Notes under the pieces: generated by a model
The model's input: the letters and a program-made list of their open reading frames with translations, nothing else
Told to the model about the DNA's origin: nothing
The model's database searches: none
Shown: one piece after another, positions 32,502 to 64,000 of the stretch
Layout of the letters: each line of letters begins with the position of its first letter
Numbering within the stretch: position 1 is the first letter of the stretch
Translations under genes and position numbers: made by a program
Source: Ylistrum balloti
Lineage: Eukaryota
Assembly: GCF_031769215.1 (NCBI RefSeq)
Contig: NW_026782534.1
Span: 248,001 to 312,000 of the forward strand
DNA length: 64,000 nucleotides
Reading direction: 5' to 3'

Positions 32502-35500
32502 CTAAACATTGTTCTTATATACGGGAGCATCAGACAGAGGCAGTGGTTTGTTTCCCAGAATAATGTCAGCGGCCTTTTCAGTCAGCAATATTGTCGGGCC
32601 GTTCAGGTTCCCAGTAGTAATATTTAGGATGATAGAGGCATCAACTACTCGAAGATTATCTACACCTAAAACACGAGTCTGAGAATCCAACACAGCCATC
32701 GGGTCACTCTCATCTCCCAATTTACATGTACATAGTGGATGGTAATTGGTGTCTCCATTAGCACGGTTGAAGACATCTAATTCGGCGTCTGTTTGACTGT
32801 CAGGTCAAGGCAATATCTCTCGACCAGCAGGGAAAGGATCGAACGCTTTCTGTTTAAACACTTTCCTGGCAGCTTTGACGCAATCCCTCATTGTCCTCAC
32901 ATCTTATTCATATATGTGAGTGGGTTGTTGGACTTTCCTCTTGATACGTGAAGAGGACCATTGTCTCCCTTTGTTCATGGGTCTGAGTTTTTTTTAATAT
33001 GGTAAACATCATATGACCATCCCTTTGCCCAAGCCTTCTCCCATCCATCGTAGTCCCCACCATTGCCACGGATGTATACCATGACTCATTGTTGTTCATG
33101 TGAGGCTCTGGGTTCGGTATGGTAGAACCAGTTGTGCTTGTCATCACACAGGTTGTACGTGAGGGCAGCAGACATGTGGATCTTCCAGATGAAGTCTCTT
33201 TGGCCAGCCTCCAGAACACATTGTTGTTAGGATCAGCAGACAGTCGATTGGTGAGAGTACAGCCAGCCGAGCCTGCACAGACGATTATGTAGTCATAGGC
33301 GGGTTTAGTTTTAGATATCTTGGAGGCATTACCTGTATACCATTTGTGTAACTGGATTGTTGTCTCATTCGTGACGTGCAGCTGAAAAATCGACACTGGA
33401 GATTGACTCTTCCGATCTGCCTCATCAGAGGAGTGTCGTCAAGAAGTAGCTTTCGTTTATCGGGTTATCGGGTTTGCTATTTGATGTCAGTGATATGATC
33501 AATAACTGCAGTATGTACAACTAGGTCGGTGAGCCACTTCAGGTCACATACACCGGATAGCACCCAGATCCTTTGCAACTTCGTTGATTTTCCAAAGGAA
33601 TAATCTCTGAGAGTTTTCTCAAGGCAAACATTGAGTTCATCACATATGGGACGTATGCTGTGGTCGGGGAACAGTGTTACTTAGTGCAGAATGTCTCCAC
33701 ATATTATTAAGTCAACATACTTCAACACACCCACATTTGTCTGGCAAATCTGAAAGTGAAAGCTCCCGTTTATCACCACCACACATTGCTGATCTGATTC
33801 CTTATTTAGTGTTTTAAAACTTTTTTGACATCCCTGAAAAGTTATTTTGGTTCTTTTAGAAGTGTAGATTTACACTCCTGCCACCCTCTGTGCACATTTA
33901 TCATGAACTCCTCATAGGTCAAGTGTTTGTGGTCCTTTCCATTAGTGACGACCTCACCTCCAAGTGGGTGGTTCAATATTCATTCAACAGCTCATTCTTT
34001 ACTTTACATCTTTGTTCGCAAATTTCCTATCTCTCTTGAATTTCTTATCCTATATCACTACGCCAAGTTCCGCGTTCTAGCCTTTAGGAAAAAATAAGAC
34101 CAATAAAAGTTAATATAAGGGAAATGAGGAATGCCATTGTTTATATATACACTGTGGTATGGTAAGATTTATGGAATAAGCGCAAATACTAATCCTCAAA
34201 TGATTTATGGTGTGTGTGTCATTAGGAAGTTTGAACCGTCTCATTGACCAAAATCTACTCATATGCTTGGATCATCGACAAGAAAATGAGGTGTATTCAT
34301 TCACATTTACGTTTAATCAAGATTTTCTTTGTTGTCATTTCTATTGAACATCATTCTATCAATCACGAATAAACGAAACAAATTATCAGAATTAATCGAA
34401 GTCTCTTCTGAAAGTGTCCTCTTAAGAAAACATGTTTTCGTGTGTTACAAGTTTGAAAGTATTCGATAATGATAATAAATTGAGGATATTTGGTCCATCT
34501 ATCTCCCGAACTTGGTGCTGGCACAGGAAATGGCAGCATGGATATCAAAGATGACCATTGCAACCTTTAGTTCACGATTCTCAAAAAATCTAAAACAAAT
34601 CTTATCTACCGTGTGCAGGGAAAAAATTCGTCAAAGTTTACTTTCATCCCCTTCGTGTTTCCACAAGTAGAGCGAAAAATAAGAGGAAGGCCAGTTAAGA
34701 TGAAAAGTGCATACTCATGTATTTTAAAGTGAATTTTATACTGGGAGAAAAAGTTTGATTCGGTGGCGAAAAAAACTGAATTATTACATATCCATTGTCA
34801 GCATAAATTTGTATTTAAAGATGCTAATAGCTTTTGTGTGTTTTGTACAATCTTACAAAAACGTTCATACAATGTATTTATATGAACAATGCTTAAGAAA
34901 GGGAAGCCGAACTATCAATCATTTTTTCAAAAGTACACAACTAGAAGTTGATCACTGATGTATAACATTTTGAGTAAAAACTGATAAATGGCATCTTTTC
35001 CAATTCATGAAATTTCATAGTTTTCTTATTTTTTGCTAATACTTGATTAATTATGACCAAAAGAACTCACGTGTCTCTTTGATAATTGTATAGTTGTTGA
35101 TCACAGAATCATGTACACGATAAATGCTAATTTAACTAAAAGGATATTCTCAAAGAGACGGACAAGATAAGAATAATAATTTCCATTATACACTATATAT
35201 ATCCAATTCGACAGCAATTCAGCGGACCACACGTCAAGAAGGTAATATAGTCGGTATTTTCTTTATTTCCATATCCGATTGATATATATAAGAATAAGAA
35301 ATAAACTTGTTTATTGACATCAAACACACTTGTCCATCATTGAACTGCACTTGTGTAGTATTCTAATGTGTTTATTGTGACATCGTTCACTTCATTAGGC
35401 TATATTTTCGTTAATTTAATGAAAATGTTTTATCCACAAATTGACATGTTCGTGAAAGTGGATATCGTAGTACTCATCCAAAAACAAACCTCATCGAAAT

Positions 35501-35772
35501 AGAATTTTCATTATTAAACCACGATATCTGAGCGCCAGGAGAATATTTTTTACAATATTGAATACTTGCTGAGACGCTTATTTCCTTGCACAAGGGGATC
35601 ACATTGATTGGAGGCATATCAATGTGCCGTCTTTGTCGAAAATAAGTAGGGATGACTTCTTCCCAGCATTAATGGCCTTGGTAGGTTTGACAATGTTAAT
35701 AGTTCTGACTTATGACAGGGCGGTGTTGTGATCTGTTACGGAGCTGTAGGTGGCATACCTGCCACGAACACA
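32502..35772 (-). pseudogene. Pseudogene of the HAD-HAD-choline dehydrogenase fusion gene (copy 0)
   Basis: Exon-2 remnant 35569-35772 (FDKDGTL with in-frame stops); only the 3' end of exon 3 remains (~34484-34580, DIHAA, TGG>TAG); last exon from 34081 is frameshifted, with ~780-bp and ~50-bp deletions in the GMC domain; C-terminus ...PVYKNNV* at 32502. Confidence 0.9.
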
Positions 35773-39281: not shown

Positions 39282-42200
39282 CTATACTTTGTTCTTGTAT
39301 ACAGGAGCATTAGACCAAGACAGTGGTTTGTTCCCCAGGATAATGTCAGCCGCCTTTTCAGCCAGCATTATTGTCGGGCCGTTCAGGTTTCCAGTAATAA
39401 TATTTGGCATGATAGAGGCATCAACTACTCGAAGATTATCTACACCTAAAACACGAGTCTGAGAATCCAACACAGCCATCGGGTCACTCTCATCTCCCAT
39501 TTTACATGTACATGATGGATGGTAGTCGGTGTCTCCATTAGCACGGTTGAAAGCATCTATTTCAGCGTCTGATTGACAATTAGGTCCAGGCTTTATCTCT
39601 CGACCAGCACGGAAAGGATCGAACGCTTTCTGTTTAAACACTTTCCTTGCAGCTTTAACGCTGTCCCTCATTGTCCTCAAATCATATTCTGTAGACAGGT
39701 AGTTGGCTACAATCTTTGGATGGTCTTTTGGATTTCTGGTTTTCAGCTTGACATAGCCTCTACTGGTGGCGCGCATAGGTCCCGCGTGGAGTTGATAGGC
39801 ATGTTCATTACCAGTATTACGCCCATGATCGTTTGTAACAGCTGGTACGAAATGGAACTGAATGTCAGGATATTCTAAGCCTTCTTCACTTGGAACAAAC
39901 CCGCCACTTTCGAAGTGAGTCGTCGCTCCATCACCTGTCTGTGTAAGGAACCACTGAAGCCCAATGCGAATCATATTGTGAGGGAATTTCCACTGAGCAG
40001 AATAAAGAGTGATGGGAAGCTTGCATGCCTCCTGTACACATACATCAAGATGGTCCTGGAGGTTTTCTCCAACACCAGGAAGGTGTTGAACTACAGGAAT
40101 GTCCAGCGACTTCAGCTCGTCTGCATTACCTACACCCGATAACATGAGAAGCTGAGGAGAGTTGATTGATCCTCCACTCAAAATCACCTCCTTCTCTGCT
40201 CTGATAACCTTTTTTACTCCCTTCTGTTCATACTCTACACCCACGGCTCGCTTGTTCTCAAATACAATCCTCGTGGACAAGGCATTTGATTCCACTGTCA
40301 CATTGTCACGTTTTAAAGCTGGCCTGAGGTAAGCCATAGCAGCACTCCATCGCCGGCCTTTGTGAATGGTCATGTCCATCGGCCCTACGCCCTCCTGCTG
40401 ATAGCCGTTCATGTCTTCTGTAAACGGGAAGCCGGCCTGCTGACCTGCTTCTATAAAAGCCTGATGCAGTGGGTTGTTGGACTTTCCTCGTGATACGTGA
40501 AGAGGACCATCACCTCCCCTGTAGTCATTCTCCCCAAGTTCATGGGTCTGAGATTTTTTAAAGTATGGTAAACAGTCAGCATATGACCATCCCTTTGCCC
40601 CAGCCTTCTCCCATCCATCATAATCACCAGCATTGCCACGGACGTATACCATGGCATTGAGTGAAGACGATCCTCCCCAGACTCGTCCTCGTGGCCAGTA
40701 CATGACCCTGTTGTTCATGTTAGGCTCTGGTTCGGTATGGTAGAACCAGTTGTACTTGTTATCATACAGGTTGTACATGAGGGCAGCAGGCATGTGTATT
40801 TTCCAGGTGTAGTCTCTTGGACCAGCCTCCAGAACACACACTTTGTTGTTTGGATCAACAGACAGTCGATTGGTGAGAGTGCAGCCAGCTGATCCTGCAC
40901 CAACGATGACGTAGTCGTAGGTGGATCCAGCTCTAGATATCGTGGATACATTCCTCACCTGTATACCATTAATGCAACTGGACGATTGTCTCCTTCGTGG
41001 CGTGGTGCTGAAATATCGACTCTGGAGGTCGACCTTCCTCGTCAGAGGAGCCACATTTAGATGTATCTTCCGTTTATTGGGACTGGTCGATGAGTCATCC
41101 ATGATATGATCAATCACATGGTCTGCAGTAGGTACAACTAGGTCGGTGACCCACTGCAGGTCATCTGCAGACCCTACACCTGATAACACACCAATCTTTT
41201 GCACCCTCGTTGATCTTCCAAATGCAAAATCTTTGAAAGAATCACCAACTAAGACAGTTTTCTCAGGGCTGACATTGAGTTCGTCACATATGATTTGTGT
41301 GCTGTGATCAAGAGATCGTGCGAAAAAGTGCGGATCATCTCCACAGATCATCATATCAACATACTTCAAAACACCTAGATGTGTCAAATCTGACAGAGCA
41401 AGCTCTCGTTTATCTCCAGTACATATTGCTATTTTGATTTCTTTTCTCTTTAGTGTTTTGAAGAATTTTTTTATATCCCTGAGAAGAGATTGTGGTTCTT
41501 CTCGAAGTATACATTCACACTCCTGCCAGACTTTGTTCACAACCATCAGAGACTCCTCATATGTCAAGTGTTTATGGATCATCTCCACTAGTGACGACCT
41601 CACCTCCAAGTTAGCGGTTCCATGTTCATTCAACAGCCCGTTCTTTACTTTACCTGTCTGTTCGCATATGCCTAGCCTCTGGTAAATTTCTGATCTCAGA
41701 TCACAAAGACCAGTCGCTTGTTCTAAGCTGTAACGTAAATGAGAGGATCAATGTACAACTGATCTTGACTCAATTCAGATTATAAAAATTTTGTTTGCAA
41801 CATCATGCATTCTTAGCTTAAGACAAATGAGGTATACTAATGTTTATGTATACAATGTCATACGCCATGGCCAATGATGGACACTTTTGAGAATGACTGA
41901 TGGAATATGGAATAAAATTATAATCGTCGGATAACTTATTTAATCGGACGAGGTTCCTATTATGTAAGCAAGTTGTCTTTGCCAACGAAATTAGTTCTGA
42001 ATTAACCAAGAGTGATTTTTCTAAAATTAATCAAAAATAACTAAAAATTTTCACTGATAAATTTGGACCCTGATCTTCAGAACATTACCCTAGAATTCTA
42101 CCTATTATTCTACAGTGTTTACACATGTTGTATTTTCCTTGGAAAAAGGATGGGCATTACCAGGAATTGAACAAGACTGTATCATTATGAATTTTGGGGG

Positions 42201-45200
42201 CTCTAATCGTCAAAAAATCAATTGCATGATTGAATCAATGATAAGAAAACGAGGTAATTTTCAGTAATTTTCACTCAACTTCAGACGATTGCATTTCTAA
42301 TGCACGTCGTTCAGAAGTCTTAACATATATATTTACTGTGTTAGTTAGGATAATATATTTAAGATATTTAAAGCATCAAATCGTAATACATACTTTGAAC
42401 AGATTTGGTCCGTCCATTTGCCGAACCTGCTGTGGGCACAGAGGATGGTACCATGGAGATCTAAGATGATCAGGGCAACAGTCGGTACATGATTTTCAAC
42501 ACTAGCATACTCATCAGAATTGGAAGATTCCAAGGAATATGGTTCGATCAAGATTCTTTTGTCATTGGAGTAAGCGTAGCATTCCCTCCATTGGTCCTCC
42601 GGTAGGATGAGGGGCAACAAGTCTTGGACACTTTCTATAACATGATTGGCCGCTGGGTACAAATCATTTGTCTGACCTATACCACTTAATACCCCTATAT
42701 TCCAGCCAAGCTGTGCTGCCTTTCCCATACCCACATCAGCTTTGGTGTCTCCCACCATGACAGTATCTTCAGGGTTCACACCAAGCATTTCGCAGATCAG
42801 CTGAGCGTTATCTGCAGCAGGTTTTGGGACATTAGTTGGGTCATCACCACAAACGATGTGATCAATCCATTTGTGAATTCCTATATCATGTAGCAATGCT
42901 TCAGTGGCTTGCCGTCGATCAGAAGTACAAATAGCGATCTTAATTCCGTTTCTTTTCAAAATCTTAAACAAGGTGTTCAGGTCCGCTAACGGTTTAGTTT
43001 GGAAAATACCATGTCCATCTTCCCAAATGTTGATCACAATGTCACGACCTTTGTTTTCATCGAGACCTTCTTGTCTGAGAAGCTCTACTAAAGCATCTTG
43101 TACCATTTCATCAGTAGCCTCCGCAAACAGACCTGGCACAACACGGTCAGATTCGTTACAAAATCCGATCTTTTTAAACACTTTTTCTTGAATGTCTAGT
43201 CCGGTGTTTTCTTCCAACCTGAAACGTTAGCGTTACTGATGTGATCATCTTAATTTGTTAAACATACCACAGTCCATGATGATATCGTATAAAACAGTAT
43301 ACCATTTACCAGAAAAAAACTTTCATTAAAATTTACCTCCACCCCTTTCACGCTTCCAAAAATAGAGCAAACAATAATAAACAGCAAAGGAATACCAACA
43401 TTTTAACATAATCATATATCAAACCCAAATCAAATAAACTAGAATAAATATGAATAAAAAAAATCACACAAAGTACAAGGAAAACAGCACCAGGTGTTCC
43501 GAAAGAGTGAGCATCAACTGCTTCATCGACATCCGCCATGTAAATCTTGTCAATCCAAGTACGCAGTGTCACGTTCTCAAATGAGAACATGGTATACAAC
43601 GGAACCAACAGGCATAAAAAAACATTCAGCTTCATATCGCACAAAAAAATGTAAAACTTCCCCGGAAACCTCACCAATCTGTATTTTTTGAAACGCTGTG
43701 TTAAGTGTTTGTTCTTCAGTTGACAACTTCTTTCACGGAAATCGTAATAATGGGAACATGCCATAAAATATCGAATTAGCTATTTCTTGAATTCATTGAT
43801 TTTAACATACAGCATCGTGGAAAGCTGTCCATGATGGTTTCAGTTTCAGAAAAGAGAGAAATAATCGACTGATGTGGAAGAATCTATAGTGTACTTGATT
43901 TCCAATTCTTGATAAGAACATCAATATATGTTTAACACAATATAAACCACCAATTCGACAACATTTAAATAACTTACCAGACAAAGTCAATGAGGTGATA
44001 TAGTCGGTATTTTCTTAATTTTCATACCTGATTGGTATTAAAAAAAATAAGGAAAACTTCCTTAATGACAGCAAACACAGTAGTAATATTCTAGTGTGTA
44101 TTGTGAAATCAGTCATTTTCATAGGGCTACATTTTTGTTGATTTTATGTATACTCTTTATCAATTAATCCATATGTTCATGATAGTGGATATCGTAAGTG
44201 CTAATGTAAATCACTTAGATTCAGCGAATACTTCTCTTAACGATCCCGCATCGTCAGACATATTCGCGAATACATGATTTAGAATTGACTTCAACTTCGC
44301 AAATGATTAGCAAATGATGAAACACGGACTATTCAAGACTCCGATATCGGTTACAGAATCAACATAGATGCTTTCCAAAGTTACAAAATACAAATAATAG
44401 CGAGGTATTTGAATTTGCTATTGACACTCAACGCGGATTCATGCGAAAATAAATCCCACGCAAAATATAAGTGATTTACATTGTTCATTCAAAATTAAAC
44501 GTGAAACCCGAAAATATTTAATTTGATAGTATTGAATACTTACTTAGACGCTATTTTCTTTGCCCAATGAGACCACATTGCCTGACAACATATCAGGGTG
44601 CCGTCTTTGTCGAAAATAACTAGGGATGCCTTCTTCCCGGCATCAGTGGACTTGGTAGGTTTGACACTGTTGATAGTTCTGACTCTTGAAAGGGTGGTGT
44701 TATGATCTGTTACCGAGCTGTAGGTGGTGTAACTGCCACAAACACCTGGAAGAAAGGCATAGTAAGACAGTTATGGATATTGTAGCTCCTAGGGAAAGAC
44801 AGTACATGCGTCTTCGGGAGATTCGATAAAGAAAACCTATCAGATCAAACAATTGTGCGTCCCTTAGGAATACATGTACATACTTAGACACAACATATTA
44901 AATAGAGAAATTAAGACATACGCCTTCAATAGATGCCCGTATTTCTTAATGTGATTGGCAGCCCTTCCTTACAAGTTAGATAATTGTACCATTTGGAAAC
45001 GTCTTTGGCAAATGAGAACAGCAAGGAAAATATCTTATGCCAAAGAAGTGTGATACAAAGATTCTGGATTTCCCATTTAAAAAATATAAATTAAATTAAA
45101 TTACTTAAAACGAATAACATGCATACTTCACTTATGTATATGAATACTTCATTATTTTCACTTCTGCACTTAATTAGTAATATGTGAGCTGCAGTACGCT

Positions 45201-45436
45201 TGAATTACTACAAACAGTTTTATATCTGAAAAAAAGTTTCACGAACGTTCCTGTCCTCACAATAAGACCTGGATTTACATATGCAGGGATGAAATCTTTG
45301 TGCACTACACACCTAACAAATGCTTTAGTTTGGGGTGGTATGCCGATATATTCTTTGAAGCTTTCGACGCAGTGAAGATTCTGCTGAGACAACCGGGACG
45401 AAGCAGTCCTATGCAGGTCTTTCCAACAGTTGCCAT
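39282..45436 (-). CDS. CHDH: Mitochondrial HAD-HAD-choline dehydrogenase fusion, copy 1; coding exons 45436-45313, 44745-44544, 43218-42394, 41727-39282 (1198 aa)
   Basis: GT-AG exons of 124/202/825/2446 nt with phases 1,2,2 give one ORF. HAD motifs DKDGT, T, K, GDTKAD; second HAD DLHGT...GDSFKD. GMC motifs [36 protein letters not shown] and GNLNGPTIM closely match vertebrate CHDH. Confidence 0.9.
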
Positions 45437-49032: not shown

Positions 49033-52000
49033 TCACTTACTACATTTATACACAGGAGCATTAGACCGAGGCAGTGGTTTGTTCCCCAGAATAATGTCAG
49101 CGGCCTTCTCAGCCAGCATTATTGTCGGGCCGTTCAGGTTCCCAGTAATAACATTTGGCATGATAGAGGCATCAACTACTCGAAGATTATCTACACCTAA
49201 AACACGTGTCTGAGAATCCAACACAGCCATCGGGTCACTCTCATCTCCCATTTTACATGTACATGATGGATGATAGGCACTGTCTCCCAAAGCCCGAACA
49301 AAGGCGTCTATTTCAGCGTCTGTTTGACAATTAGATCCAGGCATTATCTCTCGACCAGCGCGGAAAGGATCGAACGCTTTCTGTTTAAACACTTTCCTTG
49401 CAGCTTTGACGCTGTCCCTCATTGTTCTCACATCATATTCTGTAGACATGTAGTTGGCTACAATCTTCGGATGGTCTTTTGGATTTTTGGTTTTCAGCTT
49501 GACGTACCCTCTGCTTGTAGCACGCATATATCCCACATGCAGTTGATATGCATGTTCATCGCCATTTTTACGCCCATGATCGTTCACAACAGAAGGTAAG
49601 AAGTGAAACTGAATGTCGGGATATTCCTGACTTTCTTCACTATGGACAAACCCACCACTCTCCAAATGTGCGCTGGCTCCATCTCCTTTCTGAGTCAGAA
49701 ACCACTGTAGACCTATCCGAATCATATTGTGAGGGAATTTCCACTGAGCAGAATAAAGAGTGATTGGAAGCTTGCATGCCTCCTGTACATACACCTCAAG
49801 ATGGTCTTGGAGATTTTCTCCGACACCAGGAAGGTGTTGAACTACAGGAATGTCCAGTGCCTTCAGCTCGTCTGCATTACCTATACCCGACAGCATGAGT
49901 AGCTGAGGAGAGTTGATTGATCCTCCACTCAAAATCACCTCCTTCTCCGCTCTGATAATCTTTTTTACACCCTTCTGTTCATACTCTACACCCACGGCTC
50001 GCTTGTTCTCAAATACAATCCTCGTGGACAGGGCATTTGATTCCACTGTCACATTGTCACGTTTTAAAGCTGGCCTGAGGTAAGCCATAGCAGCACTCCA
50101 TCGCCGGCCTTTGTGAATGGTCATGTCCATCAAACCTACACCCTCCTGTTGATAGCCGTTCATGTCGTCTGTAAACGGGAAGCCAGCCTGCTGACCTGCT
50201 TCTATAAAGGCCTGATGCAGTGGGTTGTTGGTTTTTCCTCGTGACACATGAAGAGGACCATCACCTCCCCTGTAGTCATTCTCCCCAAGTTCATGGGACT
50301 GAGATTTTTTAAAGTATGGTAAGCAATCTGCATATGACCATCCCTTTGCCCCAGCCTTCTCCCATCCATCATAATCACCAGCATTACCACGGATATAGAC
50401 CATGGCATTGAGCGAAGATGATCCTCCCCAGACTCGTCCTCGTGGCCAGTACATGACCCTGTTATTCATGTGAGGCTCTGGTTCGGTATGGTAGTACCAG
50501 TTGTACTTGTCATCACAAAGATTGTACATGAGGGCAGCAGGCATGTGGATCTTCCAGGTGTAGTCTCTTGGACCAGCCTCCAGAACACACACCTTGTTGT
50601 TAGGATCTGCAGACAATCGATTGGTGAGAGTACAGCCAGCTGATCCTGCACCAACGATGACGTAATCGTAGGTGGATCCAGCCCCAGATACCGTTGAGGC
50701 ATTCCTCACCTGTACAGTACTGGTGAAACTGGTTGGTTGTTTCGCTCGTGGCTTGGTGCTGAACAATCGACACTGGCCATTGATACCTTGGGGCTTCCTG
50801 ATCGAAGGAATGCCAGCTGGGGATATTTGTTTACGGGCTTGTGGATCTTTTAAAATATGATCAATCACATGATCTAGAGTAGGTACCACCAAGTCGGTGA
50901 CCCACTTCAGGTCATCTGCAGACCCTACACCTGATAACACTCCGATCTTTTGTACCTTTGTTGATTTAACAAAAGAAAAATCTTTGTTAGAATCACCGAC
51001 TATGACAGTTCTCTCAGGACTGATATTGAGTTCATCACATATGAGGTGCGTGCTGTGATCAGGAGACCTTGAGACAGAGTGTGGATCATCTCCACAGATC
51101 ATCATATCAACATATTTCAACACATCAAGATTTGTCAAATCTGACAGTGCAAGTTCTCGCTTATCTCCAGTACATATTGCTATTTTGATTTCGTTTCTCT
51201 TTAGTGTTTTGAAGAATTGTTTGATGTCCTTGTGAAGTGATTTTGGTTCTTGAAGAAGCGTAGATTCACACTCCTGCCAGACTTTGTTTACAACCATCAA
51301 AGACTCCTCATATGTCAAGTGTTTATGGATCATCTCCACTAGTGATGACCTCACCTCCATGTTAGTGGTTCCATGTTCATTCAACAGCCCATCCTTTATT
51401 TTACTTGTTTGTTCACATATTCCAAGCCTCTGATGAATTTCTGATCGCAGACCACAAAGACCAGTCGCCTGTTCTAACCTGTAACAAAAATTGAGGCCCC
51501 GAATTATTTCTGTCTTGTATTTCTGTACATACTGTATTTAGAGCTCGTAATAGCGTTTTGTAGACAAGGTTACATTTTGTGTCTCGGAATTAAGTCAGGG
51601 TGTTGAGTTAGTATTCCTTTTTGTTCATCTCTTTATGTCCAAAGACTGATACAAAAGATACAAAAGTGAAAATTTAAGAATTAGATATATTAAAGCTTGA
51701 CAATGAATTTAACCGAATCCTGCAGCTGTTTCATCCTTCTAGGTCCCGTCAGCGACGGACGCTTAGGGTTTGCATATAGAAAGCAAGCAAAGAACTCTGT
51801 GACTTGACGTATTATAATGTTTCGATGTAAATTTTAAGTGAGGGTCATGACTCTGATTACAAAGTTTAAACTGTATGCAATACAGACCTTGAGCAGATTT
51901 GGTCCGTCCATTCGCTGTACTTGCTGTGGGCACAGAGGATGGTACCATGGAGATCTAAGATGATCAAGGAAACAGTCGGTACATGATTTTCAACACTAGC

Positions 52001-55000
52001 ATACTCATCTGAATTTGAAGATTCCAGAGAGTATGGTTCGATCAAGATTCTTTTGTCATTGGAGTAAGCGTAGCACTCCCTCCATTGATCCTCCGGTAGG
52101 ATGAGAGGCAGTATATCCTGAACATTTTCGATCACATGACTAGCAGCTGGATACAAATCACTTGTCTGACCTGTGCCACTCAGTACACCAATATTCCAGC
52201 CGAGCCGCGCTGCCTCTCCCATTCCCACGTCCGCCTGGGTATCTCCCACCATCGCAGTATCTTTAGGGTTCACGCCAAGATTTTTGCAAATCCTTTCAGC
52301 ATTATCAGCAGCAGGTTTTGGAACATTGTCAGGGTCATCACCGCATGCGATTTGATCAATTAAACTGTGGATTCCGAATTCTTCCAGAATTTCTTCAGTT
52401 CCTTTCCTACGGTCAGACGTACAAACAGCAATCTTAATATTGTGTCTTCTCAAAATTTTAAACAATGTTTTTAGATCTGCCAAAGATTTGGTTTTATAAA
52501 TGCCGTGTCCCTCCTCCCAGACGTCGTGTACAATGGCGTGACATTTGTCCTTATCCACACCCTCCTGTTTGAGAACGTCAATTACAGCATCTTGGACCAT
52601 TTTAGTTGTACCCTCTGCCAACAAGCCCGAGACAACTCGGTCAGATGAACTACAGAATCCGATCGCTTTAAACACTTTCTCCTGAATATCAAGACCGGTC
52701 GCTTCAACCAACCTGAAATTATAAATCGATGAAATTAGATGTTGGTTTATCAATAATACATTCAATAATATTTTTATATATTGTTATGGTATTTGTCATA
52801 GAAAAGTAAAAGTATCAACAATTAAGCAACATTAAAACACGAGTCTGAGAATCAGCCATAGGTCGCCATCCGTTCCCATCTCATACTCTTATGATCGACG
52901 GTAGACACTTTCTTAGAACATCAATGTTTATTTATTGAGAAGGAGAAACCCTGCTTTATAAGGACAGGCAATAACAAATACTAATTTAAGAAATTTATTA
53001 TACACCTGTCAGCAATAAAGAGCATTCATTACATATTACGTAACAATTTTATAACATTCTGTCCTTCTACAATAACATCAACGTGATTAATATACAGTGT
53101 TCGCTTTCAAAAAGTTGTGAAATTTTTTTCCGAATCCTAAGAACAACTTTTTAGTTTGAAATGAAATATTTACTTGGAGGCTATTTTCTTTGACCATGGG
53201 ACCCACGTTGTTTGACAGCATACCAAGGTGCCGTCTTTGTCGAAAATAACTAGGGATGCCTTCTTCCCGGCATCAGTGGACTTGGTAGGTTTGACACTGT
53301 TGATAGTTCTGACTTCTGACAGGATGGTGTTATGATCTGTTACGGAGCTGTAGGTGGCGTAACTGCCACGGACGCCTGGAACAATTAAAAAACAAAACAT
53401 GAATAGCAAGAAAGTCATTGTTAGAGAAAAGTTTACACGAAATTATGAATTTATCACAAAAGCGTTTCGTCCTTGTAGGAATCATCAGTAACAGGGGCAT
53501 CACTAATGGAAATCTTGAGGAGGAGTTGGAAAAAATATATTTAAAAATGAGCTGTTGAACTGCAGATGGGAAGCACTACTAGTACTAGTTTATGTCACTA
53601 TTCATATGCACTAAAAGGTGGCGGGTGTAATGTAACCTCAAGAATTTCATCAGCGGAGTTTTTAATCGTAAAGGATTGTACGAAATACATACAAGGGAAT
53701 ATCATTTTTCCAAATGACTATAGTAATACATACACTGTATGTACAAATTATTATTTATACTGCAGCATACTGCTATTTCCTCCTTCTTGGACTCGTTCGG
53801 CCTAACGTGAATGACAGTTACACTATGACCCATATGGAAGAGTATGCCCCTCTTTGTAAGATATATTTTTTGTCTGAAACAGTCGTTTTAACTTGTATCT
53901 AACGACACCTTTCATTGTAATGAATCGGATCGAAATTTTCCTCTTCAAACTGCCCATCAAGGAACTACTTTTTGCCTAATCGAAAGACTTCAAAAGTTTC
54001 TAAAGATAGAATTACATTGAAATCTACCAGCTTCATTTCAGAATAGGATTTTTGTTAAGATCTTAATACAAATGGAATTGAGTGACAGGCGAAACCTATA
54101 AAAACCCTCTCCTTAGAAAATCAAAAAGATGTACTCGTAAAATTGAATATGTAAGTAACCTAGGATAGCTGTATAACAAGGCGTGTGTTTTTGGAAAATG
54201 TAACTACTAGTTTTAATGGCGGTTGTGCTACACGCTATTTTCAAATGTATTAAAGGCAGATAAGTTGTCCATTCATTCGTAACACTGCGCATGTCCTTAC
54301 TAGATAGTTGACAGATATCGATACAAAGTAATTACCTAATAACGTTAACGAATCCCTATACTGACTCCACAATCGATATATTTGTGCTTCCATCAAGATC
54401 GAGAGAGCCATGTAGAAAGATCTCCCTGAGCAGAGAGAGAGAGTTGTCGAGAACTTTTTTGTAAGTATGGAAGGTGATAAATGTTTTCTTGTCTGTATAC
54501 ATAATATTCAAGCTTTACGCTATTGTGGTTTTGCGTTACAGTGTAATATATATTACAAACGTTATATGATAAAAAAGATTGCAATGTGATGATAATAAAC
54601 AAAGGTTACCAACTGTGTAAGGAAAAAAACATTCTTAACTGTTCTCTTCTTTTACACAACTAAGAAGCGCCTACACGCTTGAATAAAACATATGAGATAC
54701 ACCATGAACAGTGTGACATATATAACACATTGAACATAGACAGATATCCAATATACCCACGAGACTTCAGGAATTAGAGGCAATATTGGGCGAGAAATTA
54801 ACTGGACAAAAACACACAATGAAAAAAGGATAAAAACGATTTTATAGTATTATTTGTAATCTAATATTATCAGTCATTTCAAAAATCACTGTTCGGGTAT
54901 CCGAAGGTCGACTTCCAAAAATACTTTGTAATTATATACCAATATATGGTAACATTTTGAACCATTTATACAAATGGTATACATTAATGTTTTAAGAATA

Positions 55001-55141
55001 TTTTCAACACCACATACCTAACATAGTTTGTAGTTTGGGGTGGTATGCCGGCATATTCCTTGTAACATTTGATGCTGTCAAGAGTCTGCCAAGACAACCA
55101 GGACGCAGCATCCCTATGCAGGTCTTCAAAACTGTAGTCAT
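49033..55141 (-). CDS. CHDH: Mitochondrial HAD-HAD-choline dehydrogenase fusion, copy 2; coding exons 55141-55018, 53375-53174, 52712-51888, 51478-49033 (1198 aa)
   Basis: Exon lengths and phases identical to copy 1. Canonical CHDH residues [13 protein letters not shown] and GNLN; HAD1 DKDGT/K/GDTQAD intact. Upstream non-coding exon donors at ~56217 and ~56241. Confidence 0.92.
52833..52880 (-). other. Short CHDH last-exon fragment inside intron 2 of copy 2
   Basis: taaaacacgagtctgagaatc (21 bp) is identical to the CHDH DSQTRVL coding segment, followed by degenerate agccataggtcgccatccgttcccat resembling the adjacent CHDH sequence. Confidence 0.6.
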
Positions 55142-56789
55142 GGTAACTGTTAACTTGAGGGATAACTTATTTTTCAATGGAATAGTTTATCTGTAATCAA
55201 GCAATACTATTAGAATTTAAAGATAAAAGCATACATTTAAAATTTGTTTTCATCAGCTAAGAAGAATCTTTTCAATTATATCCTACATCATGATTTATAC
55301 GAAATCAACAATTTTCAAACAGACGCAATTCCTGGGTTTAAAAATATTTTCTTAAGTGCCCATATGATTGTATAATTAATAGGAAAGTTGAAAAGACGTT
55401 TGATTTTCCCATACAAAATCCCTCAAACAGAATCATTGCATGCATTTTACATTTTTGGAAAAAAAGTCATGGTACTAATTGCTGTCTATTTTGTTATATT
55501 GTGAACAGTACTCCCTTTATTAGCATATGTAATATTTAATTTCTGTATAAAATTTCTGGTATTCTAATCAATGACAGAAGCCATATTTAAGCAAAATTTC
55601 TGTTATTCTAATCAATGACAGAAGCCATATTTAAGCAATCTTAAAATACAGAAAAACCTTCATGTACCCAGGTAATACTGAGTCGGTCATTACCATTGAC
55701 CGATACAGAATTGATCATTAAATCTGAGAACAGAAATCATGTTACAGATGCTTGCTACTTTAATTATCCGTTTGACAGAGGCTGACTTATTACAAGTAGA
55801 AAGTCTTTATACAAAGGTCTATACAACAAACATGGTGATATTTTATACGTGATCAGTACATTTTACAAGTTAACACCATCGACATCGAACATTCGTGCTG
55901 GGGTATTTAAATGTGATTGACGGGAACGTTCTCAATAGAAAGCATAGAAAAATGATTTAACACCCAGTGATGTTCGATTCTCTTAGATTCTCAACCTGTT
56001 GATAACATCACTTGTATGCAAAAATATCTTTACAACTTTGAACACTATTTCTTGGTAAATCTAGATAATCAGGTCTGTTATCATTATAACAATGCTTCCC
56101 AAATATAGGACGTGAATTTGAACACACACGTGATTTTAATTAGATAACTTATCATGTTCATAACATTTCCATTTCAAATACGAGATTATTATATCTTTCT
56201 TATTCAGATTAATTACCTGTTACTCCAAGCTGATACATACCTGTTTTCACTCCGACACAAGCAAGCAATCGTGAAACCTGCCCACTAAAAACTATGTGTC
56301 TGGATACACGTAGATATACTTATCATATCTTACTCAGATACTGACACATTTCACAGACATGAGATAACATTTCACTGCATCTAAAATGAACTGACAATGA
56401 CATCGTCTCGAGATTCGCCAAGCTGGGCGACCTTGTGTCTGACACACTACTTTGTTGGAACGAGTTAAGTAGGTGAGCTGGCCATGGGAATATTATCTCC
56501 CTTCTACAGATAGGGCATCATGTTGTATCGTGCAAGGTCTGAGCTTTTGGGGGAGATGGTTGCTTTCAAATATATTGTATTCGTATTTATTCCTAAGAAA
56601 GTGTCATCAATAAAAAAAATATTCGTAAAGAATATAAAAATGGGGTTTGACCTTAATTGAAAAGGATAGCTCTGGGACTATCTGAAGACGCCATACAAGG
56701 GTCGGGAAAAGACAGGAAATTAAGAAATGTGCCAACCATTTACTAGTTATAAACCTAGATCTCGTTATTTGCAATATACTACCTAACAC

Positions 56790-58620
56790 CCTCGTATCAC
56801 TGCCTTAAACCCTCGTTATACTACCTTACACCCTCGTTATACTATCTTACACCCTCGTTATACTACCTTACACCCTCGTTATACTACTTTACACCTTCGT
56901 TATACTACTTTACACCTTCGTTATACTACTTTACACCTTCGTTATACTACCTTACACCCTCGTTATACTACCTTACACCTTCGTTATACTACCTTACACC
57001 TTCGTTATACTACCTTACACCCTCGTTATACTATCTTACACCCTCGTTATACTACCTTACACCCTCGTTATACTACTTTACACCTTCGTTATACTACTTT
57101 ACACCTTCGTTATACTACCTTATGTCTTCGTTATACTACCTTACACCCTCGTTATACTATCTTACACCCTCGTTATACGTTATACTACTTTACACCTTCG
57201 TTATACTACTTTACACCTTCGTTATACTACCTTATGTCTTCGTTATACTACCTTACACCCTCGTTATACTACCTTACACCCTCGTTATACTACCTTACAC
57301 CTTCGTTATACTACCTTACACCTTCGTTATACTACCTTACACCCTCGTTATACTATCTTACACCTTCGTTATACTACCTTACACCCTCGTTATACTACCT
57401 TACACCCTCGTTATACTACCTTACACCTTCGTTATACTACCTTACACCCTCGTTATACTACCTTACACCTTCATTATACTATCTTACACTCTCGTTATAC
57501 TACCTTACACCCTCGTTATACTATCTTACACCCTCGTTATACTATCTTACACCTTCGTTATACTACCTTACACCTTCGTTATACTACCTTACACCTTCGT
57601 TATACTACCTTACACCCTCGTTATACTACCTTACACCCTCGTTATACTACCTTACACCTTCGTTATACTACCTTACACCCTCGTTATACTACTTTACACC
57701 TTCGTTATACTACCTTACACCCTCGTTATACTACCTTACACCCTCGTGATACTACCTTACACCTTCGTTATACTACCTTACACCTTCGTTATACTACCTT
57801 ACACCCTCGTTATACTACCTTACACCCTCGTTATACTATCTTACACCCTCGTTATACTACCTTACACCCTCGTTATACTATCTTACACTCTCGTTATACT
57901 ACCTTACACCCTCGTTATACTACCTTACACCCTCGTTATACTACCTTACACCCTTGTTATACTGTCTTAAACATTCGTTATACAACCTTACACCTTCATT
58001 ATACTACCTTACACCCTCGTTATACTACCTTACACCTTCGTTATATTACCTTACACCCTCGTTATACTACCTTATGTCTTCGTTATACTACCTTACATCC
58101 TCATTATACTACCTTATGTCTTCGTTATACTATCTTACATCCTCATTATACTACCTTATGTCTTCGTTATACTACCTTACATCCTCATTATACTACCTTA
58201 CATCCTCATTATACTATCTTACACCCTCGTTATATTTCCTTACGCGTTCGTTATACTACCTTAAACATTCGTTATACTACATTATGTATCCGTTATACTA
58301 CCTTTCATCCTCATTATACTATCTTACGCCTTCGTTATACTACCTTATGTCTTCGTTATACTATCTTATGCCTTCGTTATACAACCTTACACCTTCGTTA
58401 TACTACCTTACACCTACATTTTACCTTACATTCTCATTATACTACCTTACACTTTCGTTTTATCTTACATCCTCATTATACTACCTTACACTTTCGTTTT
58501 ACCTTACATCCTCATTATACTACCTTACACTTTCGTTTTACCTTACATCCTCATTATGCTACCTTACACCTTCATTTTACCTTACATCCTCATTATGCTA
58601 CCTTACATCTTTGTCTTTCT
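56790..58620. repeat. 21-bp minisatellite (~85 copies), decaying to the right
   Basis: Unit cttacaccctcgttatactac; explains the YYLTPSL/VILPYTL pseudo-ORFs. Confidence 0.95.
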
Positions 58621-60834
58621 ACCTCATCTTCTTGTTAAGCTGTCTAACATCTACATTATAATACGTTATGCATGCATTATACATGTACTACCTTACACTA
58701 TAGTAACATGTCCTCTTTATAATACTTTTCACTTTTGTTTTACTACTTCACACTATTGTTACAATACTTTAGCCTTCTTAATATAACCTTGGATTTTCAT
58801 TATACAGCCTTACATCCTCATTATATAATAAATTCATACTTCATACTCCTGTTATACTGCCTTAATCCCTCGTTACATGACCCTGATCTTATCTGTCTGC
58901 TGAAATGTTGTCCAGAAAGACCTTGTATCATATAAATACAACAAAGACTGTCACTACAAGCAGTAACTTATACTTGGTATGTATATGATTCTGAAGTGTC
59001 AAATGTGATTGTGAATTCAAACATTTCCATGACATTAGTGTAAAACTTTATCTGGATAAGCAAACTGAATTCATACAATAACACTAATTCACAGGGAATA
59101 CATTTCAATCATATAGTTTATTGATCGTTACAAACTTTTAGATGATGGGAATGATTGTCTTACGCCTAATATAGCAGTTTTCATGGTCCCAGTCACCTGT
59201 AACAAATGTTAACATTATCACCGGTCAACTTCAATTGGAATACTATAATGAGGAGTATAAAAAAAGTGTCCCTGGTAGATTTAACAATTGGAATGTCTGG
59301 GAAATAGATATACCATACTACATGTATCTTGATTGCACATTCTATCATAAATAGATATAAAGATATTGATAATCAATTATCTGCAGCTGTAGCCATTGTT
59401 TTCAAACATCTGACTGAGAGAAGTTGTCATAGTAATGTTTTCTCACAATACTGACGTCTCAATATTCATAACAGTGATGTCTAGGACAACTCAGTACTGA
59501 TTTAACAACCATTTCAATAGCTACCGCTGCAATTTTCAATGCACTTTTTCTACCACCTCATACATTAACTGGGGGCATTTAAAATACCCCCTTGTCAACC
59601 ATATCACAAGCAAAATTCCCCCATAAAAATTCACAATACCTCTTTATCTGCTATTATTACATACAAACTTATAAGCTGTTTACTGAATTTATGTCTTATT
59701 TGATTTGCTCAACAATTCTCACTGGTATATCATTTAGAACCTACAAACAGATTTTTTCATCATAATATTGTGTATATATGAATAAAACATTGATAGCATA
59801 GTATTCACAGAAAACAACGAAATATAAAACAATTAACCTCAAGAAATCTTAAAATGACAAAGGACTCGTTCAATTATAATGCCAAAGACAATACAAAACT
59901 ACAAACAGCAAACATGGCACATAATATACAATGCTGAGTTACTTATTTGGAACATTTTGATATCTTGCTAAGTGATGTCAAAAATGAACATTAGTCACAC
60001 TTATCTTTGTTATAAATAAGGCGTAGTCTTCTATAATCAGTTATAGACCTATGGTGAGGTGAACATGAAGTTATATGAATATATGACAAATTATCAACCC
60101 AATATTGTTTTATCATGAGGAGTTTCATATCAATATTACAATGGCATTGATTGTTCAAAAATAAGTGACAGAAAAAACAAATCCAACAGATCAGGCAGTG
60201 TGTAAAATAAAAAGATCATAAGAAAAAGAAATCACATTGTCTAATAAAACCTGGAATTCAATCCTCCTTATTTAGATTACAGGAAAAAAAACTCTGAAAT
60301 AGTTGAGTTTCAGGAAAAAAGCATAAACAACATGATTATCCAGGTACAATGTCTGTATCAATGTATATCAACATAACTGTGAAAAAATCAATGTAAAGAA
60401 AAATTGTACAACCCAAGTCTGAAATGCATACCTCTGTTATATTGATGGGAAGGGTACATAGGATCAGTTTAGATTGAAAAACCTAACACTACTTATTAAT
60501 GTGTTTGTTTAAAAAGTTTACATCCTGGCAAAAGCTGAGATCATGTAAATATTGTACATACAAACAGTGTACTGCTGACAACATCTTATTCTGAATACAA
60601 AATGTCATACAAAGCACTAGTATATACTGTAAACAATCATTTGGCTGTAATTATACCTTTGAGTATTTCACACTAAACTTGAAAGCACTATAGTTATAAA
60701 TCTGCTACATGACAATATTGCCTGTTATGCTGTACTCTCATATATACTATCTGTGATTATTAACAAACAATATTAATATACAGAAAACACATTTGTGATC
60801 ACATTCACATCTGATCTACTAACTGATGAACATT

Positions 60835-62130: not shown

Positions 62131-64000
62131 CTATACTTTGTTCTTGTATACAGGAGCATTAGATCGAGGCAGTGGTTTGTTTCCCAGGATAATGTCAGCG
62201 GCCTTCTCAGCCAGCATTATTGTCGGGCCGTTCAGGTTCCCAGTAACTATATTTGGCATGATAGAGGCATCAACTACTCGAAGATTATCTACACCTAAAA
62301 CACGAGTCTGAGAATCCAACACAGCCATCGGGTCACTCTCATCTCCCATTTTACATGTACATGATGGATGATAGGCACTGTCTGCGTAAGCACGGTTAAA
62401 GGCATCAATCTCGGCATCTGTTTGACAATCAGGTCCTGGCAACAGCTCTCGACCAGCGCGGAAAGGATCAAACGCTTTCTGTTTAAACACTTTCCTGGCA
62501 ACTTTGACACTGTCCCTCATTGTCCTCACATCATATTCTGTAGACAGATAGTTGGCTACAATCTTCGGATGGTCTCTTGGATTTTTGGTTTTCAGCTTGA
62601 TGTTACCTTTACTGGTAGCATGCATTGGTCCTGTATGCAATTGGTAGGCATGTTCATCACCAGTTTTACGCCCGTGATCTTTCACAACAGAAGGTAAGAA
62701 GTGAAACTGAATGTCGGGGTACTCAAGACCTTCTTCACTATGGACAAACCCACCACTCTCCAAATGTGCGCTGGCTCCATCTCCTTTCTGAGTCAGAAAC
62801 CACTGTAGACCTATCCGAATCATATTGTGAGGGAATTTCCACTGAGCAGAATAAAGAGTGATTGGAAGCTTGCATGCCTCCTGTACATACACCTCAAGAT
62901 GGTCTTGGAGATTTTCTCCGACACCAGGAAGGTGTTGAACCACAGGAATGTCCAGTGCCTTCAGATCGTCTGCATTACCCACACCCGATAACATGAGAAG
63001 CTGAGGAGAGTTGATTGATCCTCCACTCAAAATCACCTCCTTCTCTGCTCTGATCACCTTTTTTACACCCTTCTGTTCATACTCTACACCCACGGCTCGC
63101 TTGTTCTCAAACATAATCCTCGTGGACAGGGCATTTGATTCCACTGTCACATTGTCACGCTTCATAGCTGGCCTGAGGGAGGCCATAGCAGCACTCCATC
63201 GCCGGCCTTTGTGAATGGTCATGTCCATCAAACCTACACCCTCCTGTTGATAGCCATTCATGTCGTCTGTAAACAGAAAGCCAGCCTGCTGACCTGCTTC
63301 TATAAAGGCCTGATGCAGTGGGTTGTTGGTTTTTCCTCGTGACACATGAAGAGGACCATCACCTCCCCTGTAGTCATTCTCCCCAAGTTCATGGGTCTGA
63401 GATTTTTTAAAGTATGGTAAGCAATCTGCATATGACCATCCCTTTGCCCCAGCCTTCTCCCATCCATCATAATCACCAGCATTTCCACGGATATAGACCA
63501 TGGCATTGAGTGAAGACGATCCTCCCCAGACTCGTCCTCGTGGCCAGTACATGACCCTGTTGTTCATGTGAGGCTCTGGTTCCGTATGGTAGTACCAGTT
63601 GTACTTGTCATCACACAGGTTGTACATGAGGGCAGCAGGCATGTGGATCTTCCAGGTGTAGTCTCTTGGACCAGCCTCCAGAACACACACCTTGTTGTTA
63701 GGATCTGCAGACAATCGATTGGTGAGAGTACAGCCAGCTGATCCTGCACCAATGATGACGTAATCGTAGGTGGATCCAGCCCCAGATGTCGTGGAAGCAT
63801 TCCTCACCTGTACAGCACTGGTGGAACAGGGTGATTGTCTCCCTCGTGACATTGTGCTGAACAAACGACATTGGACATTGACACTTCCCGGCTTTCTCAG
63901 TTTAGGAAGAGCATTTGGTATCATTTGTTTGCCAGGAGTGGTTGGTGGGTCTTCTAAGATATGATCAATCACATGGTCTACAGTAGGCACCACTAGGTCG
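62131..64000 (-). CDS. CHDH: HAD-HAD-choline dehydrogenase fusion, copy 3 (3' part of last exon; 5' end outside the window)
   Basis: Open ORF containing the end of HAD2 (DLVVPTVDHVIDHI), the linker and a full GMC domain ending PVYKNKV*. Confidence 0.88.
   Translation of the reverse strand, partial: DLVVPTVDHVIDHILEDPPTTPGKQMIPNALPKLRKPGSVNVQCRLFSTMSRGRQSPCSTSAVQVRNASTTSGAGSTYDYVIIGAGSAGCTLTNRLSADPNNKVCVLEAGPRDYTWKIHMPAALMYNLCDDKYNWYYHTEPEPHMNNRVMYWPRGRVWGGSSSLNAMVYIRGNAGDYDGWEKAGAKGWSYADCLPYFKKSQTHELGENDYRGGDGPLHVSRGKTNNPLHQAFIEAGQQAGFLFTDDMNGYQQEGVGLMDMTIHKGRRWSAAMASLRPAMKRDNVTVESNALSTRIMFENKRAVGVEYEQKGVKKVIRAEKEVILSGGSINSPQLLMLSGVGNADDLKALDIPVVQHLPGVGENLQDHLEVYVQEACKLPITLYSAQWKFPHNMIRIGLQWFLTQKGDGASAHLESGGFVHSEEGLEYPDIQFHFLPSVVKDHGRKTGDEHAYQLHTGPMHATSKGNIKLKTKNPRDHPKIVANYLSTEYDVRTMRDSVKVARKVFKQKAFDPFRAGRELLPGPDCQTDAEIDAFNRAYADSAYHPSCTCKMGDESDPMAVLDSQTRVLGVDNLRVVDASIMPNIVTGNLNGPTIMLAEKAADIILGNKPLPRSNAPVYKNKV

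Follow-up and report, generated by a model that had tools for sequence, protein, structure and literature searches.

Arg5,6 and Atp25 are fungal composite precursors that the mitochondrial processing peptidase (MPP) processes (PMC8734313, PMC5063612). In yeast Arg5,6, MPP cuts at an R-2 site, with an aromatic residue at +1, inside an internal presequence-like segment; this internal cut depends on a strong presequence at the N-terminus, and Icp55 is predicted to trim the end so created (PMC8734313, Friedl et al.). Mammalian ACAD10, a HAD-kinase-ACAD precursor, is also cleaved internally, likely by MPP, after Ser617 (preceded by Arg616) and before Ser637 (preceded by a Tyr, with Arg634 at -3); in a disordered linker the two sites are separated by about 20 residues, both fit the MPP consensus, and one is of the R-x-Y/S type, with the slash marking the cut (PMC11342911). 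Human mitochondrial TOP3A undergoes C-terminal trimming by MPP (PMC12585908). Here we analyse a window of Ylistrum balloti DNA (64,000 nucleotides; assembly GCF_031769215.1, contig NW_026782534.1, positions 248,001 to 312,000) that contains a four-exon HAD-HAD-CHDH gene in three tandem copies, all on the minus strand, together with one pseudogene of it. The gene encodes, in this order, an N-terminal presequence, the domains HAD1 and HAD2, a linker of about 60 amino acids and a BetA-type choline dehydrogenase (CHDH). The linker is very probably a presequence-equivalent segment, with a cleavage-type motif that is under strong purifying selection. That the HAD-CHDH protein is an MPP-processed polyprotein is our prediction from its sequence and from analogy with the systems above, and we hold it to be rather probable.

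Like Arg5,6 and Atp25, HAD-CHDH combines an N-terminal presequence with an internal presequence-like segment that has an R-2, aromatic +1 signal at the junction; the junction signal is conserved where the fusion is kept, and other lineages have the two halves as separate genes. The fungal precursors are, however, unrelated proteins and their cleavage is experimentally proven, whereas that of HAD-CHDH is predicted and its motif is more uniform across taxa. ACAD10 resembles HAD-CHDH, putatively mitochondrial as well, in being an animal precursor with an N-terminal presequence, one or more N-terminal HAD-type domains and a C-terminal flavoenzyme. Moreover, the linker of gene copy 2 is laid out like that of ACAD10, with R621-L-F-S-T followed 21 residues on by R642-N-A-S-T. 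The two precursors differ in their enzymes and pathway, and their linkers are non-homologous; ACAD10 cleavage has been shown by westerns and mass spectrometry, in contrast to the predicted cleavage here. In TOP3A, MPP acts in an animal at a site other than the N-terminus, as it would in HAD-CHDH, but there a tail of about 90 amino acids is removed rather than two enzymes separated. A first-pass annotation of this DNA, made from the sequence alone, had pointed to fungal precedents; Arg5,6 and Atp25 stand as such, but with ACAD10 and TOP3A the precedents are not only fungal.

The linker and its motif

The linker of copy 2 (50671-50850, minus strand; 60 amino acids from HAD2 to CHDH) lies inside the long minus-strand open reading frame (ORF) 49033-51384, whose best database match is P0001, an uncharacterised Ylistrum balloti protein of 1198 amino acids (100% identity). 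In Pfam and NCBIfam searches, copy 2 showed a pair of HAD-IA-type domains ahead of a GMC oxidoreductase. With 787.5 bits, the CHDH part exceeds the equivalog cut-off of the betA profile TIGR01810 (732.1 bits), and the GMC N and C domains (PF00732 and PF05199) both match it. Since the TIGR01810 profile begins exactly at YDYVIVGAG, after the end of HAD2, the linker is extra to both catalytic domains.

The composition of the linker is that of a presequence. In copy 2 the 58 residues encoded at 50671-50844 (minus strand) include no Asp or Glu, 9 Lys or Arg and 14 Ser or Thr; the corresponding 59 residues of copy 3 (63769-63945) are likewise free of Asp and Glu, and the 58 residues of copy 1 (40920-41093) contain a single Asp. 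These translations bear out the acid-poor linker of about 58 residues described in the first-pass annotation. If the linkers are taken to run from the end of HAD2 (DHVIDHI[LM]) to YDYVI, they comprise 60-62 amino acids and have a net charge of +6 to +9 and an isoelectric point of 10.9-11.8. When the exon-4 product was modelled with AlphaFold2 from an alignment of 40 sequences (mean predicted local distance difference test score, pLDDT, 80.7), residues 182-235 (window 50680-50841) formed one long stretch without secondary structure and with pLDDT below 50 (about 28-38), flanked by a confident HAD2 (pLDDT about 80-90) and GMC domain (>90). The linker is thus predicted, from this model, to be disordered between two well-folded domains.

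We scored likeness to presequences by amino-acid log-odds, leave-one-out. Only N-terminal presequences served as positives, taken from 35 full-length fusions (residues 2-35) and from the N-termini of 17 stand-alone CHDHs; folded domains served as negatives. The top-scoring 21-residue window of P0001 is 619-639, which lies in the linker and ranks above the true N-terminus, and the linker beats every other internal window in 30 of the 35 full-length fusions. As judged by pLDDT and composition, the linker is therefore both disordered and presequence-like, as would be expected of the junction of a composite precursor processed by MPP, which should be accessible or disordered.

Two motifs are of interest in the linker of copy 2: RLFST (50755-50769, minus strand; R621-T625 of P0001), the upstream candidate site of the MPP/Icp55 type, and VRNAST (50692-50709, minus strand; V641-T646), the CHDH-proximal candidate R-2 site. 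Both fit the MPP consensus at the junction (Arg at -2 or -3, an aromatic or hydrophobic residue at +1, then Ser, Ala or Thr), as the first-pass annotation had proposed. Their counterparts are RYFST (41004-41018) and VRNVST (40941-40958) in the linker of copy 1 (40920-41099, minus strand), and RLFST (63853-63867) and VRNAST (63790-63807) in that of copy 3 (63769-63954, minus strand). The linker remnant of the pseudogene reads RFFS (at about 33381-33392), with a frameshift just downstream. When ten scallop-family sequences are aligned, conservation is by far the lowest in the linker; even there, R-x-F-[SG]-T, a middle Arg and Q-x-R-[NH]-x-[SA] are invariant or almost so. The earlier observation that the most diverged part of the protein keeps RxFST and VRN[AV]ST in every intact copy was thus correct.

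We analysed the conservation of the motif in the 60 residues before the GMC domain of 74 homologues in which CHDH is preceded by one or more HAD domains. Expected counts were taken from composition-preserving shuffles, which control for composition and not for ancestry. R-x-[FY]-S-[TS] occurs in 64 of the 74 linkers (1.1 expected) and at least twice in 20 of them (0.01 expected); an upstream second strict motif is present in 15 of 74 (0.17 expected). In 59 fusions the motif falls within -40 to -8 of GxGxxG, and it is concentrated 15-25 residues before GxGxxG. R-x-[FY]-S-T was found in named species of Mollusca, Nemertea, Annelida, Platyhelminthes, Arthropoda, Chordata, Hemichordata and Echinodermata, namely in bivalves, gastropods, a cephalopod, a nemertean, an annelid, a flatworm, a copepod, amphioxus, two hemichordates and two crinoids. 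Loss of the motifs in orthologues had been named beforehand as an observation that would speak against an internal processing site; we found instead that R-x-[FY]-S-T is kept in these named species of eight phyla. The status of VRNAST is different. It is kept, as VRN[AV]ST, in the intact copies, but it is restricted to the scallop family, whereas elsewhere the form is R-x-[FY]-S-T. VRNAST is the scallop-family variant (Phe/Tyr to Ala) of the CHDH-proximal site, and Mizuhopecten has RNFAT. Its position is the common one: in copy 2 it lies in the -40 to -8 zone, with its Arg at about -16 from GxGxxG, and in other phyla the Arg of R-x-[FY]-S-T is at -15 to -25.

Two internal controls make this conservation meaningful. 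The HAD1-HAD2 junction is acidic (20% Asp plus Glu) and contains the strict motif in 0 of 28 proteins; the HAD2-CHDH linker of the same 28 proteins has 6% Asp plus Glu, and the motif in 26. The N-terminal presequences of the fusions contain the strict motif in 1 of 35. The spread over eight phyla and these two controls are stronger arguments than the shuffle test. It could be supposed that the linker is a neutral relic, a decaying old transit peptide in which the motifs are coincidental, and it is indeed the fastest-evolving part of the protein. However, 64 motifs were found where 1.1 were expected, and the motif is kept in protostomes and deuterostomes while its flanks are unalignable; these statistics exclude chance and neutral decay for practical purposes, and we find the idea hardly credible.

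R-x-[FY]-S-T could in principle be a phosphorylation site for a basophilic kinase or another docking motif, unrelated to proteolysis. An Arg at -3 of an invariant Ser suits basophilic kinase logic, and the conservation of the motif is stricter than that of ordinary MPP sites; to our knowledge no kinase is known for this linker context. On the other hand, the position of the motif matches the presequence end of stand-alone CHDHs, the surrounding composition is presequence-like, and an invariant aromatic residue followed by Ser-Thr is the MPP/Icp55 pattern of Arg5,6 and ACAD10. We consider a role unrelated to proteolysis highly improbable.

Separate halves and the age of the fusion

The strict R-x-[FY]-S-[TS] is absent from all 17 stand-alone CHDHs examined, which come from fish, sea urchins, starfish and venerid clams. 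A looser R-x-[FYLI]-[SAC] is, however, present no more than 40 residues upstream of their GMC domain in 11 of 17 (2.1 expected). Their presequence resembles the linker in that it occupies the same zone before GxGxxG, is basic, rich in Ser and Thr and poor in acidic residues, and carries this related motif, the CHDH domains themselves being orthologous; it differs in being N-terminal and in lacking the strict form. A maximum-likelihood tree of the CHDH domain, in which some stand-alone entries are truncated gene models, tracks animal phylogeny, with stand-alone forms nested among fusions at least nine times. The looser motif in the same zone, together with this nesting in fusion clades, indicates that the linker segment acts as an N-terminal presequence after loss of the HAD part.

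According to the CHDH tree, stand-alone CHDHs arose repeatedly from the fusion, and by the same sequence comparisons clams and scallops acquired theirs recently, with the linker region now at the N-terminus. The HAD-CHDH fusion is probably old, as old as Bilateria. Single-HAD fusions occur in deuterostomes and a copepod, and di-HAD fusions in lophotrochozoans. We also noted that many lophotrochozoan di-HAD linkers contain a pair of R-x-[FY]-S-T sites with a spacing of 8-54 residues (median 17), whereas most deuterostome single-HAD fusions contain one. The first-pass annotation had offered, as an alternative to cleavage, that an ancestral CHDH transit peptide was captured in the fusion; this may describe the original fusion event.

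The HAD half, too, is found on its own. Stand-alone HAD orthologues of about 290-330 amino acids occur in nematodes and a tunicate; they have presequence-like N-termini and end from a few up to some tens of residues beyond the HAD domain, where the fusion linker begins. Those identified (40-48% identity) are P0205 from C. elegans, P0127, P0135, P0140 and P0157 from other nematodes, and P0191 from the tunicate Clavelina, annotated only as 'phosphoglycolate phosphatase' or as uncharacterised. From their sequences they appear to form an uncharacterised, conserved mitochondrial HAD family; there is no vertebrate stand-alone HAD orthologue among the 120 matches listed. Since stand-alone HAD and CHDH orthologues exist, both halves are viable as separate proteins. 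The modules of the fusion are thus separate in other lineages, as is characteristic of composite precursors: CHDHs among the fusions, and HADs in nematodes and a tunicate.

Predicted processing and its alternatives

In the processing that we propose, the N-terminal presequence would drive import via TOM/TIM23 and would be removed in the matrix by MPP, which would also cut the spacer at one or both of the conserved sites. In copy 2, one cut would fall at R621-L622/F623, after which an Icp55/XPNPEP3-type aminopeptidase would trim the Phe and leave Ser; the second would fall at R642-N643/A644. This would release the di-HAD part as a free protein of about 64 kDa and CHDH as a free mature protein of about 61.5 kDa, and possibly also a peptide of about 21 amino acids. 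It is possible, by analogy with ACAD10, that the upstream second site is kept for excision of such a spacer peptide. We also considered an octapeptide of the MIP/Oct1 type (R-10) after RLFST and rejected it, as F-x-x-T fits some scallop copies but not copy 2 (F-S-T-K).

We infer the mitochondrial location, from the presequence-like N-terminus and orthology to mitochondrial CHDH, as well as the acting peptidase and the cleavage itself. The N-terminal presequence of the whole fusion is encoded by exon 1 of copy 2 (55013-55141, minus strand; placed by tblastn of P0001 and by its GT donor); it starts MTTVLK and is basic, with no acidic residue, and by composition the N-terminus is of the same type in all 35 full-length fusions. 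With this presequence on an upstream exon, the fusion can do without the linker for targeting.

It is possible, though we think it unlikely, that the protein instead works as an uncleaved matrix or inner-membrane enzyme of about 128 kDa. The linker would then be an internal matrix-targeting-signal-like sequence (iMTS-L) that binds Tom70/TOM receptors for import of a long precursor, or else a flexible basic tether. iMTS-Ls are common and remain uncleaved in many mitochondrial proteins (PMC8734313). The linker is like the Tom70-binding iMTS-Ls in being an internal stretch of presequence composition in a (here putative) mitochondrial precursor, and the persistence of the fusion across Bilateria might mean that physical linkage is advantageous. 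However, iMTS-Ls are defined by TargetP profiles, lie as a rule within folded domains and need no cleavage motif, whereas the linker is a discrete disordered segment with a conserved cleavage-type pentapeptide. A signal or tether of this kind would select for charge and amphipathicity, and not for a pentapeptide of the MPP/Icp55 type fixed in named species of eight phyla; even the real N-terminal presequences of the fusions keep the motif in only 1 of 35. The recurrence of both halves as separate proteins also argues against this reading.

Another possibility is that an internal promoter or start gives rise to a stand-alone CHDH isoform, with the linker as its presequence and the motif as its ordinary MPP site, the long form being processed or not. 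Fusion-derived stand-alone CHDHs do use the equivalent segment as their N-terminus, and NCBI models of 642 and 647 amino acids exist in Pecten (P0017 and P0020). Such an isoform would, however, lack a conserved start. As the first-pass annotation had stated, no linker Met is shared: copies 1 and 2 lack one and copy 3 contains two, and among the fusions a Met lies within 35 amino acids upstream of the first motif in 27 of 70. The linker is, moreover, in the middle of an exon, with no intron/exon boundary before it, and an mRNA contig of 4.3 kb, nearest to oyster sequences, carries the entire fusion of 1191 amino acids in one ORF. Database 'proteins' of about 800 amino acids were examined as candidate short isoforms and rejected. 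In the genomic contig L003, intron sequence and an AG acceptor lie directly upstream, so that these entries are ORF calls on the genomic last exon and not transcripts. P0017 is a deletion variant rather than the product of an internal start, because its presequence exon is joined to the tail of HAD2. We regard an isoform from an internal promoter or start as very unlikely.

The Pecten maximus models merit a separate description: in both P0017 and P0020, HAD-less variants, the presequence exon (MTTVLKT) is joined to the last 30 or so residues of HAD2, the linker and CHDH, and both linker motifs are intact. In L003 (355-2772), the remainder of HAD2, the linker and CHDH also lie in a single intron-free exon, with the AG acceptor directly upstream of it; its product, P0023, is most like a Mytilus edulis sequence.

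Several points weigh against cleavage by MPP. The 74 fusion sequences are dominated by molluscs and are phylogenetically non-independent, and the presequence score is a home-made proxy for composition. The linker is rich in Pro and Gly, and an amphipathic helix, as targeting signals typically have, may not form in it. Its motif is far more strictly conserved than ordinary MPP sites, which could reflect another binding partner. Mutation of the Arg residues in ACAD10 failed to abolish cleavage (PMC11342911), and a motif alone is therefore no proof of MPP action. A literature search found no paper on the HAD-CHDH fusion and nothing usable on the size of mollusc CHDH proteins. The sole sequencing run that matches the locus (X1) covers the introns and contains no splice joints, indicating that it is a DNA and not an RNA run, and a shorter scallop transcript is possible. 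The first-pass annotation had, in hedged form, read the linker as an internal presequence-like segment with MPP-type sites, and this description fits its composition, disorder, presequence score and motif conservation.

The gene array and its wider bearing

Comparison of P0001 with the window by tblastn places the coding exons of copy 2 at 55141-55013, 53376-53173, 52714-51887 and 51489-49036, with all borders canonical GT-AG. Exon 2 (53173-53376, minus strand) encodes the start of HAD1, whose motif I, FDKDGT, is intact, with both aspartates of DxDG[TS]. Exon 3 (51887-52714, minus strand) encodes the remaining part of HAD1, the acidic HAD1-HAD2 junction and motif I of HAD2, DLHGT (51941-51955, minus strand), in which the second, acid/base Asp is replaced by His; the equivalent of copy 1 is near 42450, and relatives read D-x-[HN]-G at this position. 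This suggests that HAD2 is probably not a conventional phosphatase, in parallel to ACAD10, whose HAD domain, without a full DxD motif, is reported to be non-catalytic. Neither HAD domain reached an NCBIfam equivalog cut-off. Exon 4 (49033-51489, minus strand; stop codon 49033-49035) is intronless and encodes the remaining part of HAD2, the linker and the entire GMC choline dehydrogenase; the single-exon CHDH half could have originated by intron loss or by retroposition. The hydrophobic start of the in-frame ORF 53170-53418, considered as a signal peptide, proved to be intron read-through, as the exon 2 acceptor is at 53376 and the true start is in exon 1, at 55141.

By tblastn, copy 1 is a second complete gene (39294-45436), and copy 3 (62143-63999) is cut by the end of the window, beyond which it extends. 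The pseudogene, a degraded fourth copy with frameshifts and deletions, is at 32514-35769 (minus strand), so that the array comprises at least four tandem copies in one orientation. Between copies 2 and 3 we observed a 21-bp minisatellite (56775-58607; about 88 copies, 86% matches, unit TATACTACCTTACACCCTCGT), to which the strongly negative GC skew at 56-60 kb is due, as are spurious plus-strand ORFs at 57122-58661. The latter have no Pfam match and were rejected as genes. Elsewhere in the window, the long minus-strand ORFs 11169-12875 and 3435-4025 gave matches to a BRCT domain (E = 7.7e-6) and, weakly, to KH; they are probably exons of unrelated neighbour genes.

For composite precursors, proof of internal tailoring by MPP exists for a few fungal proteins and has only lately been extended to mammalian ACAD10 and TOP3A. 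The HAD-CHDH family offers, for comparison, about 75 sequences that span eight phyla and in which natural fission has recurred; from these, the rules for internal sites can be read by conservation, and the HAD1-HAD2 junction serves as a built-in negative control. One may go further and picture HAD-CHDH as an obligatory polyprotein as old as Bilateria and the first phylum-spanning MPP-tailored animal precursor, whose R-x-[FY]-S-T would be nearly perfect because internal cleavage tolerates no degeneracy; in lineages with two sites, an excised basic peptide of about 20 amino acids, or regulation of whether the precursor is cut, could adjust betaine synthesis in osmotic stress. We regard this larger picture as speculative and, taken whole, quite unlikely. 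The protein annotated as 'CHDH' in molluscs is, in any case, made with two phosphatase-like domains attached, and the HAD-CHDH family bears on the synthesis of the osmolyte glycine betaine in marine invertebrates.

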